A DNA stretch of 64,000 nt from Piromyces finnis finn (taxonomy: Eukaryota; Fungi; Neocallimastigomycota). A program made the position numbers and the translations under genes. The notes under the pieces are model-generated. The model had not been told where the DNA came from, searched no databases, and saw only the letters and a program-made list of their open reading frames with translations. Below are positions 1-54,090 of the stretch, piece by piece; position 1 is the first letter of the stretch, and each line of letters opens with the position of its first letter. The stretch spans positions 1 through 64,000 of the forward strand of contig MCFH01000046.1 in assembly GCA_002104945.1 (NCBI GenBank), given 5' to 3'.

Positions 1-2462
1 AAAAAAGAAATAATATGATTGACTATCAAATTATTACATATATACCTTTTTCTTTTTTGTAATTAATATTAAAAAATTTTTTTCTGTATTTTTGAAATAT
101 TTAATTATTTTAATATTAATCTAAATTTTAATATATACATACAATTTAATTAATATATATATAACTTTATAAAAACTTTATAAATTCTATTTTTAAAATT
201 GTTTTAGTATTACTATTATTCATATAAAGAGGTTTTTCATTCTGGTTTTATTATTAATATTATTATTTATTATTTTCTATAATAGGATATAATCTTAAAA
301 TATATAATTTTTTTTATTTTATTTTTAGGTAGAATTTTAAGATAATCCTTTTTTATGGATAAAGTTTTTCCAGAGAAAATTTTCTTCCAGTATAAAAAGT
401 CTAGTTTAAAATAACTCTATTTGTAATCATTGTGGCTTGACTTATTCTATAGTATTATAGAATGAAAAGAAAGCAATGGGAAATAAATATATATTTCAAT
501 ATTATTTATTATATATTAATTAATGTTATGTAATATAACTTTTTAAATAAATTTATATATAATGTAATATTTATTATGTATTTAATTTACATATTATAAT
601 TTAATTAGTTAAAATGAAAGAAATCTTCAATATCTTTTTTTAAAAAATAAAAAAATTTTTAAAGATATATTTAAATTAATTTACAAAAAAAGAAAGAAAT
701 ATAACTTTAAAATATATTAAATTTTAGATTTTTATTATTAATATATTATATACAATAATTAATTTATTTTTTTATATTCTAGATTTAAATAATGTTTTGT
801 GTAATCTTTCTATTAATGTTAAAATTTCTAATTAATTTATATTAAAAAATGATATTAATATATAATAAGATTTTTATTCAATGCTTTAATATCAAAATAA
901 ATCTCATCAAATTTAGCCAACTATATTGGAAGATAGTAAGCGTTGGTCTATGGTTATTGGATAGAGAGGTAAAAAAAATATATGAGTATTATTTTTTAGT
1001 TTGTTTAAAAAAAAGTGCTATAGGAAAAAAAGAGAAATATATATATTTCATTATTATTAGTATTACTTTATTATTATGAGAATTAATAAAGGTATTTAAT
1101 ATTTTATTGGATAAATTTGCAATTGGTAATGCTAATTTATTAATGAATTTTATTTCAAAAAATACCTTTAAATAGTTTTATGTCAAACATTTTATTAATG
1201 ATCGTCTTTCTAAGTTTTATGATAAATAGAAAATTTATTATTTTTTTTTACAAATTAATAGAATTCAATATTTTTAAAAAAATATAAATTATATAGAATT
1301 ATGTTGATAATATGCATCAAATGTTACTCTAAGCCATTTTAATTACTTTACAATATAGTATTTCATGAGATTTAATTTAAATTATTATTCATTGAGTATC
1401 ATTTTGTATATTTATGTTCATTGTTCAATATTTTATATAAAATAGAGTAAATAAAAAGAGCTTGAAAAAAGAAAAAATATTTTTTGGATAAAAGAACTAT
1501 AATTTCATAAAATTTATTGAACTTTTAAATTAATAAAGTTTAAAATTTTAATTTAATTCTTTAATAAGCATATAAATTAAAAATACACTTTTAATTTAAA
1601 ATGTATAATTAATAAAGTATTTGTGTAATATTTGAGGAATATTTTTTAAATTAAATTTCAAATTTCCTCTATTTTTTTTTATTTTTAAAAAAAGTAAATA
1701 ATTAATTTCAATTTTACTATGAAGAAAAAGATAATAATTAATTTTTTAAAAAATAAATAGGAGATATTAATATGCCATCTTATTTATACTAAATTATTAT
1801 TTAAAAGTTTTACAAGAGATTATTAACGCTTTTTACACTATTTTTGAAATGTATATTAAATATAATAAAAATACAGAAAATCATGATAAATAATAAATAG
1901 TTTATAACGTTACCATTTAAAAACAATTAATTTTTTATATGTATATTATATAAAGTTTAACATAATGACTATATTATTTATTTATAATCTTTAATATAAC
2001 TTTATTACTATATATAGAAGTCTTTATATATTACACATTTTATTATCCACTTTTGAAACTTTTTATTTAATTAAATAATAAAAAAAAAAAGAAACATTAA
2101 TACTATATTATAAACATAATTAATTTATTTGGGCTAAAAGCTTATTTAATTTTAATATTTTATTATAATATATTTATTATATATATTAAATAATTTATTT
2201 TATTTTTTGGCTAGTACTTTAAAAAAAGTTCTTTTTTTTTTTTTTATTAATTAATTAATTATTTTTTTTTTCAGTTTCATTCTATCTTTTTTTTTTTTAC
2301 ATCCATATATTTTAGTATATATCAATATATTTAATTTATAATGGATCGTTTTACTCACTATTGGTTGTTTTAATAATCTATTTTTATTTTGAAATTAAAG
2401 AATATTATAAAAGTTTATTTATAAAAGTCTAATTATTAGATTATATTAAGAGTTGTTTAATT

Positions 2463-2560
2463 TAGGTTTATAATTATGTCAACTTTATTAATATATTTTA
2501 TGATAAAGAACTAGGTTTATAATTATGTCAACTTTATTAATATATTTTATGATAAAGAAC
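2463..2560. repeat. Perfect 49-bp tandem duplication (2 copies)
   Basis: taggtttataattatgtcaactttattaatatattttatgataaagaac occurs at 2463-2511 and again at 2512-2560. Confidence 0.9.
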
Positions 2561-5500
2561 TACTTGCATTCTTCTCAAACTACATGTATTTATACATTTA
2601 CATTATGGCTTAAACATATAATCAAATACAATATATACAAATACGTTTTAATACATTTCAATACATTTGAATACATGTGACATAACGTTTCACATATTCT
2701 AACAGATTACATCATTTATAAATTAATTTATTCATGTTTTATGAAATTTGGTCTATATTGACTATTGAATATAATGTAATATATCATTGTATTATTAATT
2801 TTAAATTCTATTTTCGATTATTTTATTAATATAGTATGAAATAATTAATTTAATAATTTTAAAAAATCACCAAAATAATTCTAATTGAAATAAAAAGATT
2901 TTATTGTCAATTGTTATGCTTTGGATTTTATTCTCCTCATCCTTTTTATCTTTATCAAAAAGAAACAATATTTCAATTATAGTATAATTAATAAAAGTAT
3001 ATCTAGTATTGATAATTACTTTAATGTTCTATTGTTAAAACCATATAATTATAAAAATAGGTTATAAATTTATATTGGGCTAGAAATTTCTTTTTTTTTA
3101 TTTCAACTAATTAAATTTCCATATTTAGAAGAGCAGTTATTTAAAATTTAATTATCTAAATTAAAATAACAATAGAATAGGGGCAGACAATATTAATCTT
3201 TAAAAAAGATGACAAATATGGTTAAATTAAATAAATAAATTAATTTCTAACCTATTTTATTATATATAATAAACTTTTTAAACTTGAAAAAATATTTAAT
3301 TAATAATTGTTGTAAAACCAAGATCGGAGCCAAATATTTTATCCAATAAAATCTAAATAAAATAATTTCAAAACTTTTTTAATAATGAATAAAGTTTTAA
3401 TAAATATAAAGTTTTTCTATTAATTTAATTTTAATATCATAACTATTAGTAATGGAGTAAATTACTAAACATTAATATAATTCTAATATTCCATTTGTGT
3501 TAGAATTATTACATTGCAAACAAATAAATTAAAAAAAAAAATAGTCTTTTTTCTTTATTTTACTTTACCTATTTATTAATGTAAATTAATGTATTCTGTT
3601 GTACATGTTTTAAATATTACGATATCAAGTTTTTCTTTACTTCATTCCGATGATCCATCATACTAAATTTTATTATAATGTAAAGGATATGCCATAGTCA
3701 TACAAATTATATAGTATTGCTGATAAATCGCTTTTTAATTATTTATTATAATATTCTTAATAAAATATATTATGAATGAGTTTCTATTAATTTTCTTTTT
3801 ATTTAATTAACTGTAAAGATATAATTTTCCATAAATAAGTATTGGTAAAATCTAAACATATAAGATTGTCATTCGAAAATTTGAAATAAATATTAGAAGT
3901 GTCACGTTTTAATTAAAAATGAAAAAAAGTAGTCTTTTAGAAAAAGATCATGAGACTTATTCTATATGAATTAATTGTTCTCGTGTCAGAAATTCTCATA
4001 AACTAATTATATGAAAAGAATTTAATAATAAGAATAATAAAATGTTCAATTTTAAGTCTACTTTATACTTTATTTTCTTTATCCGCTTAGTTTTAACCTG
4101 CCATTTTGTTAACTTTACCAACTTTTTTTTTAAAAAAATTAAATTGAAAAGTTAATCTTAATATTTGTTTATTATTAGTTAGGATAGATGAATGAATCTT
4201 TATTATTTAGTACTATTTATTTTTGTTTATTATAGTAATAAGATAATAAGGTAGCATGGAATAAGAAATAAATATATAAAAACTTTTTATTTATATATTA
4301 TAAAATTATAAATAATTTTTTGTTATAGATAAGATTTTTCCATCGATTCTTATTCATTTGTAATATTGTCATTTTTTGTTATAGTACGTTAATCTAATAA
4401 ATATACAATATTATTATAAGTTATTTAAATGATTATGATGGATTATGCCTATATGCCTATATGCCTCTATATAAAAAGAATTTTATTATACCATTTTTTT
4501 TAATTGACTTTCAAGTTATGTAGACTTACCTACCATAAAAGAAAAAATCATCAAATTCAAATTTCATATATAGAAAGAAATAATATTCTATAAAAAGTAA
4601 TAATGATTTCATTATATAATGCCTTTTTTTTTTTATAAAGAATAGGAATACCTTTAAAGAATATATTCCTTATTTTTAATGAATAAGTTTTACAATATAT
4701 TATTCTTATCGATATATCTTAACTAATAAGAATTAAAAATATTATAATGGTATTAGTAAAATATGTTGTGAAATATAAAACAAGATGTGTGTTTTTTTTT
4801 TTTTTTCAGTATAGTTTATTGGTATAAATTGTCAATAATTCATAATTCTGTTTTCTAAATCAATGATTGATTATATAATTAAATATTTATTATGTTAATA
4901 AAGCAAGTATATCAGTATTAAATTAATTCATCCTTTTTATGGTTTAATGTTATTAGTAATTTTTAAAAAAATTACGTTTATAGGTTAAGTAATTAATCTT
5001 GAATTTAGATTACATACTTTTTAAAGGATTTCTTTTTACCAATATATATATATATATATATATGTATAATAGTACAGGAAAAAAAAAGCATCTATATACT
5101 ATAATAATAAAGCCATTTTATTCAATATATAATATAATTAGTATCGTTGGATAAGTATTTTTTTAATTAATAATATTATATTTTGGTGTTTATTCTAAAT
5201 ATTAATAAATCTAGTAAATAAAATATATAGAAATATTATAAATATAAAACAAATAATATATTTAAATATTTCAAGTAGCATTCATTAAATTTTAGTAATT
5301 CTTTCAGTTATAGAAATTATTTAATAGGCATTTCTATTTCTATTATTTATAAAAGTAAATTTAAACTAAATTTTATTTATTGTTAAATAATTTATTATTA
5401 ATGATAATTTTCTTTTTCTTTTTTTTTTTTTTTTTTTTTTTTTGAAATAAAGAATAGACTTATATTAGCAATAATAGTTTTTTAGTAAAAAAAAAAATAT

Positions 5501-49424: not shown

Positions 49425-51563
49425 TATATATAAAATAAAAAGTATTTATATTATTATTTTTAATTAATAAATTATTGTTATAATTTTGTAATTATACAAA
49501 CTTTAACATTTTTTATTATCCTTTAAGTTATATATATATATTTTATTTCATAGGAAGAATTGATTAATATAAATATCCATGTTTATAACGATAAAATAGT
49601 TTTTTTCTATACATTATTTTTTTTTAATATACGTTAATATGTTTGATATTTAGTATAAAGTTATATAGTGATTTAATATAATAACGATGTTGAAAGATTC
49701 GTTTAATGCTATAATTACTTTGGAATATGATGAACAATCTTTTTCTAAAGTAATCATTATAATATAAACTTTTTTTTCCCATCTTTTCTTCCTTCAGTTG
49801 TATTTTTTTATATGTTTTATCTTAAAAGATGATATTTTTTTTTTGCCCTAATTGTAACACTAATTTATTTAGTTATATATTATTTATTCATTTAAAAATA
49901 AATGAATATGTTTTACATCACATCAATTAAATTAAAATTAATTTATTTATTGATTAAATCAATACTTCTGACATCATTTCCTTTTATGGTTATTCGTATT
50001 TAAGATTCAAATTTTAATGTTACCTAAATTATAGCACAACAAATTTGTTATTGGGTGATATAAGGCATACCAAATGATATTTCTATATTTTTTAGATGTT
50101 ATCATAGAACTATTTTGTTTATTTAATATTAAGGTTTTTTAAATTTTTTAAAATGAAATTATATATATAAAATATATAAATGCTCGTATACTTTAAAAAC
50201 CTTTTTATTTTATATATAAATATTTCTTTTTTTTTTTAAATAGCTTCGATTTTAAAAGTAGTATTATAATATATATTATTAATTTCCTTCATTTTAATGA
50301 TATATCATTGAATAATAATTATATTTTTATTATTTTATTACTATCTTTATTTTTTTTTTATTTCAACTAAACTAAATAAATATTATTAAAGTTAAAGTAA
50401 AAATTTATAATATTTTTCCGGTTTATTTATTTTTATTTGTTTTTAAAGTAGTATTAATGCTATTATTATTATCATAGTAATAATGTTTATTATAATAAAT
50501 ATTATTATTGTAGCTATAGAGGCTATTATTATATTATTATTATTACTACTAGTTCAAAGTCTATAAACATAAAACCGTTCATTACACACTCTAACCGATA
50601 ATAATAAAATTTAATATAAATTCTATGTTTATAAATGGAAATACTGTAACTTTAATAAATAATATTTATTATTATTAATTGTATATTGATATATTATAGT
50701 ATATTATATAATATATTATTTTATATGTCATGATAAAATTTATGTGATGTAGATTAATTTTATTTGCAATGATTTACTTTTTATTTGTTTTATGTTAAAT
50801 ACATACATCATTCTACATTCCTACAAATAATATCTATTTCATGTACAATTACAAAATTTAATCTATTTTTTATTAAAAATAGTTACAATTGTTCTACAAC
50901 ATCTATTACGTGATTTAATTATCATTGATATATAAAAAAAAGGATTTAATCATATTATTAATTTTACTATTTATATATATAATCTATTTTTATTAAAAAA
51001 TATATATATATACAAAGGTATTTCATTTTTTTTTTTCTTTTTAAATAAAAAGAACTCATTATTAGAAATACATTAAAAAAAGGTAGTGTGTTGTAATAGA
51101 AATTAAATTTATTAGAATGAATATATGTATATTATTTTATATTTAAAATAAAACGTAGTGTTGTTGACTTTTATAAAATAAATAAATAATAATTTTATTA
51201 TTAATATTATTATTCAAAATAATCAAATAACCATATAATAAATATTAATGCTATAAAACAAAAATTATAATGAAATGTTTAGTACTATTTAGTTTTATAT
51301 ATTATTATTGTAATATTTATTTACAGATGAAAGTAAATAGTATAATTAAAAGAAAATAATTTATTTTTTTTTAAAGTAATTTTAAAAATTATTTAATATA
51401 CACTTTTTATTATATAAACATACTAATTTTATTTTATTTTTATATATATAAATTTTATTGTGTATAAAAAATTCACCTCAATAGAAATAAATATTATTGA
51501 GTAATATTTAGTTTTTTTTTCTCCATTCTTTCCAAAAAAAAAAAAAAAAAAGTTAAAAAAAAT

Positions 51564-51594
<31 letters not shown>

Positions 51595-51624
51595 ACAAGG
51601 AAATAATAATAATAAATAAAGAAA

Positions 51625-53013
51625 ATGGCTTCAAATAAGAAGAGCGTTGATGCTAATGCTTGTCAATCAAAGACTCCAATTTGCAAGTTAGCTTGCTATG
51701 GTGTTATTTTAATATTTATGATTTTCCAAGTAAATATTTAATATTTTATTTATTTTATAAAATTAAAAGAAATATAAGTAAAATAAAAAAATATATATAA
51801 GAAATAATATTTTTTTTTTAAAAAAAAAAAAAAACATAAAAGAAAATATTTTACATTTACAATATAAAAGTTAGAAATATTTTAATGATAGAATGATCAT
51901 TTTATAAGATTAAGAAATAAAAATATCAACATTAAACTGAAAGATAGCACAAAAATAATATATTAGTATTGTGTTTAATAAACATAAAAAGGAAATTAAA
52001 AATGAAAGAGTATTTTTTTTTTAACAAATTTAATAGCAACCATAAATATTAATAATGTATTTTATTATTATTATTATTTTTTTTTTGAAAAAAATAAAAG
52101 ATTACCCAAATTAAAAAATCTACTGAAATCGTTAATGATATTGGTAGCAATATTCGTTCCGAAGTTTGTGAAACTTACCAAGAAGAACATCCAAATGAAA
52201 AGCACTATGGTATTTCAGAATTAGAATCTATTTTCAGTGTCAAGTATGCTTCAAAGACAGTTTCAGAAAGTGCCTTTATTGAAAATTTATTAAACACTAT
52301 GAACGTTACTGAAAGTGAAAGATATCAACAAGATGTTTATGAATACCAAAGACGTAACAATCAATATGGTCCTTTAATTGAAAGAGGATTTGATAACGAT
52401 AAGAGATTCTACATTAAGGTAAATATTAAGGGATATAACGTTATAGATTGTAAAAAAATTGAAATAAATAATATTAGCATATTAATTAATTTGTATTATT
52501 TATTTTATAGCTTTCTTCAAAGGAAGTTGGTTATGGTCTTTTTGCTAATGTCGATATTTTACCAAATACCGTCATTGGTGCTTATCACGGTACTCTTACT
52601 CATGTAAAATCTGGTTATACTAACACTGATTATGCTTGGGATTATGGAACATTCCCAAACCCAGAAAACCCAGAAGAAAATGTTGAAATTTGTATTGATG
52701 GTCGTACTTATGGTAAATATTATTTATTATTAAAAAAAAAATCATAATAATAATAAATAAATTACTTAAACTAATGGGATGAATGTATTTATTAGGTACT
52801 TGGTTACGTTTTGTTAACCACAAGGAAGATGCTGATGCTAACTGTTATGCTATGTATGTCCCATACAACAACAGATGGTACATTGTTTACATGACCAGAA
52901 AGTTCGTTCCAAAGGGTAGTGAATTATTCATTAGTTATGGTGATAATTACTGGACTGCCAGAGCTGAAACTCACAATTATGAAGCTGAACCAGAAAAGGC
53001 TTATGAAAATTAA
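51625..53013 (+). CDS. SET-domain (lysine methyltransferase-like) protein with an N-terminal signal-anchor/TM segment; 4 exons, 280 aa
   Basis: Exons 51625-51729, 52101-52418, 52511-52712 and 52796-53013 sum to 843 nt. The hydrophobic segment is ICKLACYGVILIFMIFQI. SET motifs: VGYGLFA, IGAYHG, IDGRTYGTWLRFVNH and ELFISYGDNYW. Confidence 0.9.
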
Positions 53014-54090
53014 TTATAAGCATAAAATAAAAATAAAAAAAAAATATAGTATAAAAAATAATGTATATATAATAATTATTAAAAAGCAAATGATAATTTT
53101 TTTAAAAATTATTATTAGTATACATATAAAGAAATTTGGTTTTTAAAATTTAGAGATACAATAAACATATATTACCATCATAAATATATATTATAAAAAT
53201 ATTTAAATAATTATAAAATATATAAAAAGTCAAATTTAATCATCATAAAGTTTTTTTTTTAATAAAAATAAAATAAAATCTCATAAATAAATTAAATAAT
53301 TATTTAAAATGGTGTTTTAGTATTTCTTAGTGTTTAAAAGCAATAAAACATACTCTTTATTAATTCTTAATACTAACGTAAATAACAACAACACTAGTTT
53401 CACCAATATTGATTCAAAATAATCATTTTTTTTTTATTTAGGTTATTTATATATTTATCTATTTATTTAATTATTAATATATTTTATATGGATCTTTCAT
53501 AAATTATTAAATGATTAATATTAATGTTGAACAAATTCAATCCAATCATTTAATAATTAAATATAAATTATTATAGTATGATTATTATTGTAAATTTTTT
53601 GATTTATTTATTATTAATAAACCATAATTCTTTATTTATAATTATTTTTTTTGTATATAATATATATATTATAAATCTTTTTATTTAGGATAATTCAAAA
53701 GTTTTATATATATATTTTTAAAAATTAAAAAAGATTAGTACTAATAAATAATAACAACAACAACAATAATAATAAAAGGATTTATTATTGATATTAATTA
53801 AATAAATCTAAAAAGTATGTGTTATAAATATATATATATTAATAAATATTAATATAAGCTTATTTCATTTTACATCGTAAAATGAAACATTTTTAAAAAA
53901 TTAATAATGCTAACATAAAATTATTGTTTTATATATTATCTGCTTTTTTTTTTCTTTTCTTTCTTTTTTTTTTTAAATAAAATTAACAAACCATTTTATA
54001 TTCAATAATCACAATATCTTAAAATTATATAAATAATATTAAATGTTACAATTAAATAATAATAATAACAATAATAATTAAGAAATCAAG

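Follow-up and report, generated by a model that had tools for sequence, protein, structure and literature searches.

The window analysed here is a stretch of 64,000 nucleotides (positions 1 to 64,000 of contig MCFH01000046.1, assembly GCA_002104945.1) of the fungus Piromyces finnis (Neocallimastigomycota). At 51625-53013 on its forward strand lies a four-exon gene encoding a SET domain behind an N-terminal hydrophobic segment. The exons were read and translated from the window and specify a protein of 280 residues. The surroundings of the gene are very AT-rich, with a G+C content of 14-27% in 2-kb windows, and its three introns share the ends GTAAAT...AG (Table 1).

The initial annotation, which was made from the sequence alone, had claimed that exon 1 is joined to the SET exons in a 280-residue product, and assembled contigs from four runs in three studies bear this out. 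Single contigs of 727-1098 nt contain all four exons contiguously with 0 mismatches, as blocks aligning at 51628-51729, 52102-52416, 52509-52711 and 52795-53177, the last position being reached in the longest contig. The kind of these runs was only guessed to be RNA, but the contigs lack all three introns, a form absent from the genome, and are thus RNA-derived. Since they span exon 1 to exon 4, the anchor exon is joined to the SET exons in the transcript. The TAA stop at 53011 is present in contigs X1 and X2, which come from two studies. At the other end, the 5' untranslated region (UTR) of about 90 nt contains no ATG and in-frame TAA stops lie upstream, which makes the ATG at 51625 the first start. 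Orthologs likewise occur on intronless contigs of ~1.1-1.2 kb in Joint Genome Institute (JGI) samples, and one such contig, when aligned to the window, leaves gaps precisely where introns 2 and 3 lie. A spliced transcript encoding both the hydrophobic segment and the SET domain is therefore confirmed.

Table 1. Features of the anchored-SET gene in the window and positions of its paralogs (A-D) in the Piromyces finnis genome. C and L numbers denote genome contigs and extracted loci; other positions are those of the window.
Feature	Position	Strand	Remarks
5' UTR	51534..51624	+	start approximate; A-rich; contig X1 has 94 nt before 51628
Exon 1	51625..51729	+	start codon, Lys-rich N-tail (residues 1-18), predicted anchor (~19-35); MASNKKSVDANACQSKTPICKLACYGVILIFMIFQ
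Intron 1	51730..52100	+	GTAAAT...AG, phase 0; skipped in 4/4 contigs
Exon 2	52101..52418	+	106 residues: end of predicted anchor, helical stalk, family-specific helical pre-SET region, NVT sequon
Intron 2	52419..52510	+	GTAAAT...AG; 92 nt skipped at joint 52416/52509 in all four runs
Exon 3	52511..52712	+	67 codons + 1 nt; N-terminal half of SET: GYGLFA S-adenosylmethionine-binding loop, TDYAWDY insert, ICIDGR
Intron 3	52713..52795	+	GTAAAT...AG, phase 1; skipped in contigs
Exon 4	52796..53013	+	C-terminal half of SET: RFVNH, ELFISYG (catalytic-type Tyr), YW.AR; C-tail ..EKAYEN, TAA stop
TAA TTA TAA	53011..53019	+	stop, apparent relic Leu codon and apparent ancestral stop, from DNA alignment with ortholog transcript L008
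3' UTR	53014..53177	+	contig X1 reaches 53177
Paralog A	51625-53013	+	the window gene
Paralog B	C194:76034-77426 (L006:852-2244)	-	all three intron positions common with A
Paralog C	C13:~627448-629219 (L003:~1312-3083)	-	ortholog P0040, 361 residues
Paralog D	C200:666322-667787 (L004:353-1818)	+	P0181, BCR36DRAFT_580900, 425 residues

The N-terminal hydrophobic segment claimed in the initial annotation is present and extends over 15-19 residues, with a Kyte-Doolittle hydropathy of 2.38 over 15 residues (ICKLACYGVILIFMI) and 1.72 over 19. An 18-residue N-tail containing three lysines and two cysteines precedes the hydrophobic core, and the translation of exons 1 and 2 contains no small residues at the -3/-1 positions of a cleavage site after it. 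As a full-length stand-in for the window protein we used the ortholog P0003, which is 78% identical in the stalk and pre-SET region and close to 90% identical in the SET domain. Its AlphaFold2 model, computed from 121 aligned sequences with a predicted local distance difference test (pLDDT) score of 88.6, features one helix running through anchor and stalk (residues 16-62). By these features, the exon 1 segment looks like an uncleaved signal anchor followed by a stalk rather than a cleaved signal peptide.

The stem of ~100 residues that had been proposed to follow consists partly of such a helical stalk and partly of a helical pre-SET region that is conserved and specific to the family. The latter is encoded by exon 2, carries the motifs DLESIF.V.Y... 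and ..ERY...YGPLIERG...RFYIK and corresponds to helices 71-128 of the P0003 model; it is conserved in orthologs and in other fungi, and partly in bacteria. The NVT sequon noted in the same stretch is indeed encoded by exon 2, but it is not conserved among orthologs.

The GYGLFA, RFVNH and ELFISYG..YW motifs on which the SET assignment had been based are all encoded by exons 3 and 4. Against Pfam SET (PF00856; cut-off 22.4 bits), exon 4 by itself reaches 33.3 bits, exon 3 weakly matches positions 1-30 and full-length orthologs score 50-58 bits. Alignment A1 shows no variation in the GxG, NH and ELxxxY motifs, and the GYG loop, RFVNH, the ELFISYG tyrosine and YW are invariant or nearly so in both Neocallimastigomycota clades described below and in a distant marine relative. 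The SET domain thus appears catalytically intact by its motifs and is predicted to transfer methyl groups. In the P0003 model it belongs to a compact domain (residues 68-262) with pLDDT >90, whose best solved fold match is the ATXR5 SET domain (Z 16.4, root-mean-square deviation (rmsd) 2.8 over 183 residues, model 68-273), followed by SETD2/NSD (Z ~15.5) and G9a/GLP (Z ~15). The solved structures closest in sequence are those of the EZH2 and G9a SET parts (E ~1e-7 to 1e-5).

The initial annotation had also compared the compact SET domain with the chlamydial protein NUE rather than with Set1, Set2 or Clr4, and several observations agree with it. The pre-SET, AWS, CXC and post-SET Pfam families gave no match at E <= 1 in the orthologs P0002, P0003 and P0006, in line with the reported lack of pre-SET and post-SET cysteine clusters. 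In the ESM Atlas, Chlamydiota SET proteins make up the two top-ranking fold clusters (best template-modelling score 0.82 by target, rmsd 2.4, 189 residues), and the sole NCBIfam match is the SET part of Legionella LegAS4. A family profile covering the pre-SET and SET part (alignment A1) matches 169 of 201 sampled chlamydial-order genomes with up to 93 bits, and single-contig chlamydial-order genomes of 1.0-1.2 Mb each have one match, in open frames of ~220-260 residues. Chlamydia has one conserved SET protein, NUE, of ~28 kDa including the tag, which enters the host nucleus and methylates histones there (PMC2904774). From its size and its being the only such protein, NUE very probably falls within reach of the profile, as judged indirectly from the chlamydial-order matches. 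The data therefore support a bacterial or chlamydial-like SET domain, as a resemblance, over one of the Set1/Set2/Clr4 kind.

The gene is one of a family in its own genome. Searching the Piromyces finnis assembly (56.46 Mb, 232 contigs) with the family profile at E <= 0.01 retrieved four family members (paralogs A-D in Table 1) and no canonical SET gene. All four have the same layout, in which a Lys/Arg-rich tail and a hydrophobic segment are followed directly by an intron. The N-tail of paralog B is ~45 residues long and K/E-rich, and the cysteine cluster SCNGCC, directly ahead of the anchor, might be acylated on the cytosolic side. Paralog C has an anchor exon, extra introns and a C-terminal extension ending ..NSGF, with no -EL. 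Paralog D comprises an N-tail of ~57 residues, an anchor, an intron and one long exon with the pre-SET region, the SET domain, a K/E-rich tail and a terminal KEEL. It is ~40% identical to the window gene over the SET part and shares the intron directly after the anchor, but differs in its greater length, its longer N-tail and its long K/E-rich C-tail with KEEL, whereas the window gene ends YEN.

In Neocallimastigomycota, a word search using exon 2 retrieved nine orthologs (250-286 residues), one of them from Piromyces sp. E2, and a search with the SET part found 26 proteins, which fall into two clades. Clade A, to which the window gene belongs, has proteins of 278-286 residues; those of clade B have 305-322 residues, with a K/E-rich N-tail of 41-56 residues and a CxxCC cluster before the anchor. 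Whether orthologs keep the hydrophobic N-terminus had been put forward as a test of the initial annotation: every full-length ortholog does (Kyte-Doolittle 1.8-2.5 over 19 residues), as do the four paralogs.

The family extends well beyond this phylum. Profile A1, searched against 1.84 billion representative proteins, gave 4144 matches at E <= 1e-3 and 44 at E <= 1e-30. The named relatives outside Neocallimastigomycota come from early-diverging fungi and are all annotated 'hypothetical protein', and the Neocallimastigomycota members carry at most the generic name 'SET domain-containing protein'. The named relatives outside the phylum include chytrids (Quaeritorhiza, Phlyctochytrium, Zopfochytrium, Chytridium, Cladochytrium, Nowakowskiella, Gorgonomyces and Terramyces), Blastocladiomycota (Paraphysoderma, Sorochytrium and Blastocladiella), Hyaloraphidium (Monoblepharidomycota), the aphelid Amoeboaphelidium and Basidiobolus; no Dikarya are found among the 20 named relatives outside Neocallimastigomycota. 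Most fungal relatives have their parts in the same order, namely a tail, a hydrophobic segment, an often coiled-coil-like stalk, the helical pre-SET region and the SET domain.

Bacterial relatives, sought in species genomes with the narrower alignment A4, amount to 91 confirmed loci, of which 80 were fetched, and belong to Bacteroidota including Amoebophilaceae, to Chlamydiota, which supply many of them, and to Dependentiae/Babeliales, Desulfobacterales and Spirochaetota. Their N-termini are of several kinds. The Chlamydiota relatives examined have ankyrin-like N-termini and no anchor; those from Dependentiae/Babeliales and from unnamed metagenome-assembled genomes (L023, L024, L041, L059, L070 and L078), likely protist symbionts, have classic Sec signal peptides; and those from Desulfobacterales and Spirochaetota are ~205 residues long, with no signal.

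In a quick, unrooted FastTree phylogeny of 211 domain rows, which shows separation and not direction, all fungal rows form one clade that excludes 66 of 66 bacterial rows with a Shimodaira-Hasegawa-like support of 100, and Neocallimastigomycota clades A and B are sisters, also with support 100. The closest non-fungal kin in these alignments are bacterial SET proteins, and the fungal clade is separate from all that were sampled. The N-terminal hydrophobic segment is strong in 48 of the 77 rows of the fungal-type clade and weaker in 11; ~6 rows lack it, and the other 12 are fragments. As read from these sequences, the anchored-SET layout is family-wide and ancestral in early-diverging fungi, not a peculiarity of this gene. 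A recent horizontal transfer from chlamydiae was considered and rejected, because the fungal clade is separate and the gene has three spliceosomal introns at positions common to paralogs A and B.

We infer the orientation, compartment, enzymatic activity and substrates of the window protein from these data, and favour, with a probability of roughly 0.55, a type II signal-anchor protein whose SET domain is predicted to lie in the lumen of the endoplasmic reticulum (ER) or early secretory pathway. In such an arrangement the N-tail would stay cytosolic, the anchor would remain uncleaved, and the stalk, pre-SET region and SET domain would be lumenal. The substrates of the enzyme would then be lysines in lumenal, secretory or surface proteins, and its S-adenosylmethionine (SAM) would be imported from the cytosol.

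Two features of the family tilt the balance toward the lumenal orientation, without proving it: its C-terminal ends and its long N-tails. Paralog D and 9 of 10 further complete orthologs of it, from Piromyces, Neocallimastix and other relatives, end in KEEL, and the Anaeromyces ortholog ends AKEL, while the K/E-rich tail before KEEL varies in length and sequence. KEEL fits the ER-retrieval pattern [KRHQSA][DENQ]EL (PROSITE PS00014). The last exon of the calreticulin gene in the same genome (C200:~89894-90847, reverse strand; L099:1150-2103) likewise encodes a K/E-rich tail followed by VKDEL, which indicates that Piromyces finnis uses KDEL-type retrieval signals. Among clade-A orthologs with a complete C-terminus, 9 of 12 end in -[KHNQE]EL, with varying residues before it. 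As for the other end of the proteins, N-tails across the family are 15-90 residues long (at least 30 in 21 of 54), rich in lysine and arginine, with cysteine beside the anchor on its N-terminal side. The opposite orientation would oblige Lys/Arg-rich tails of 40-90 residues to pass through the membrane, which favours a lumenal SET domain.

Two further observations, on glycosylation and on the supply of SAM, also count in favour of the lumenal orientation. The N-H-S sequon at the SAM-binding asparagine is found in 34 of 66 bacterial rows, versus none of the 10 Neocallimastigomycota rows and 5 of the 67 other fungal-type rows. Its loss would fit avoidance of an active-site glycan, although a single ancestral change could explain it. 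A TN[x][ST] sequon just before TDY.W.Y occurs in 22 of the 67 fungal rows outside Neocallimastigomycota and in none of the 10 within. The genome also contains a multi-exon gene of the MFS_5 family (PF05631; C135:5958-8172, reverse strand). This family includes putative Golgi SAM transporters of plants and Caenorhabditis elegans. On a broader scale, we tentatively propose, at somewhat less than even odds, an ancestral SET family of early-diverging fungi that would reside in the ER/Golgi lumen, with KDEL-type signals retaining some of its members, and that would use SAM supplied by an MFS_5-type transporter to methylate lysines of secretory, surface or wall proteins.

Several observations weigh against a lumenal placement. 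The window copy itself ends ..YEN and does not carry the KDEL-type pattern; its TAA aligns with the GAA of GAA TTA TAA (..EL*) in the ortholog, so that the gene seems to have lost its last two residues by one nonsense change. Three other clade-A orthologs and all members of clades B and C also lack -EL, and a KDEL-type signal is thus not universal in the family; even where clade A keeps -EL, most termini misfit the strict [KRHQSA][DENQ]EL pattern. Neither a conserved cysteine pair that could form a disulfide nor a conserved N-glycosylation sequon was found in the Neocallimastigomycota alignment, where the two conserved cysteines (EVCE in the stalk, ICIDGR in the SET domain) are not kept in other fungi. 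The MFS_5 gene, for its part, is not proof of lumenal SAM.

The remaining points bear directly on the orientation. If the SET domain instead faced the cytosol or nucleoplasm, tethered to the ER, the nuclear envelope or the outer membrane of the hydrogenosome, it would methylate nearby cytosolic or chromatin proteins in a compartment where SAM is present. All close structural relatives are histone methyltransferases, and some chytrid members have long acidic C-tails that would also suit binding to basic nuclear proteins. The positive-inside bias in related sequences is weak (mean K+R count in the flanks 2.65 on the N-terminal versus 2.17 on the C-terminal side, p = 0.03; more on the N-terminal side in 23 members, equal in 16 and fewer in 15), and the anchor has lysines on either side, a pattern shared with signal-anchored outer-membrane proteins. 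The lack of -EL in the window copy also fits this orientation. However, this orientation requires the long basic N-tails to be translocated, gives no reason for the conserved KEEL of paralog D or for the -xEL ends in clade A and turns the loss of the N-H-S sequon in the fungal clade into a coincidence. On balance we regard a cytosol-facing tether as clearly less likely than the lumenal signal anchor, but as the most probable of the alternatives.

A lumenal or secreted SET domain could in principle also be released by signal peptidase, as a soluble protein retained in the ER by -xEL or exported. The classic signal peptides of the Dependentiae/Babeliales relatives would be a precedent, and soluble residents of the ER typically end in signals such as -xEL and KEEL. 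With 15-65 residues ahead of the hydrophobic core, however, the N-region is far longer than that of cleaved signal peptides, small residues are missing at -3/-1, the helix of the P0003 model runs unbroken from anchor into stalk, and an extracellular SET enzyme would be deprived of SAM; we consider this quite improbable. Less probable still is an anchored SET fold that has become a binding module or pseudo-enzyme. Activity in the fungal clade is so far only inferred and its named members outside Neocallimastigomycota go by 'hypothetical protein', but the nearly invariant GYG, RFVNH, ELFISYG tyrosine and YW form the pattern of an active SET domain.

Comparison with described systems separates what is familiar in the window protein from what is new. 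It resembles the Chlamydia NUE (CT737) and Legionella LegAS4/RomA type in its compact SET domain, in the lack of cysteine clusters and in the short helical region that comes before. NUE, however, is a soluble effector secreted by a type III system, whereas the fungal proteins are the fungus's own and are predicted to be membrane-anchored; the chlamydial relatives examined have no anchor, and the fungal proteins form a clade of their own in the phylogeny. Nothing suggests a role like that of NUE in a host nucleus, as Piromyces finnis is not an intracellular parasite. With the plant H3K27 mono-methyltransferase ATXR5 and with SETD2, NSD and G9a, the protein shares the fold over its whole globular part (model 67-280) at 13-22% identity; all of these, however, are soluble proteins of the nucleus that carry PHD, AWS or pre-SET modules, and have neither an N-terminal membrane anchor nor a KDEL-like end. 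The order of tail, anchor, stalk and catalytic domain, and the need for lumenal SAM, would instead recall type II Golgi/ER enzymes such as the plant Golgi polysaccharide methyltransferases, which depend on SAM delivered by MFS_5 transporters. These have a Rossmann-type fold and sugar substrates, in contrast to a SET fold and, presumably, protein lysines here, and the likeness is one of placement, not of ancestry.

Textbooks present SET enzymes as the proteins that methylate histone lysines, and they are usually assigned to the nucleus or the cytosol. To our knowledge, SET enzymes have not been reported from the ER/Golgi lumen, and protein lysine methylation hardly at all; our literature search brought up no account of a SET enzyme that is membrane-anchored, secreted or ER-lumenal. 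The kind of enzyme is already known; its placement behind an anchor is new. If the lumenal reading is true, this conserved and expressed family, with its SET domain behind a signal anchor and, in one branch, an ER-retrieval signal at the end, would mean that proteins are methylated on lysines within the secretory pathway, raising the questions of which lumenal or secreted proteins are its substrates, how SAM enters and why early-diverging fungi kept the system. The family also ties these fungal proteins to bacterial SET proteins from chlamydiae and further eukaryote symbionts, and so bears on the origins of both. With full-length transcripts, four paralogs and many orthologs in hand, the lumenal question is directly testable.

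Among the wider family, P0032 from Phlyctochytrium bullatum (1007 residues) combines three LIM domains with a hydrophobic segment and the pre-SET and SET regions. Were it a real single protein, its N-terminus would have to be cytosolic, but it is possibly an annotation fusion of two neighbouring genes and was not used as topology evidence. Another member, P0106 (802 residues), contains two SET domains and ends in SDEL, a terminus of the KDEL type.

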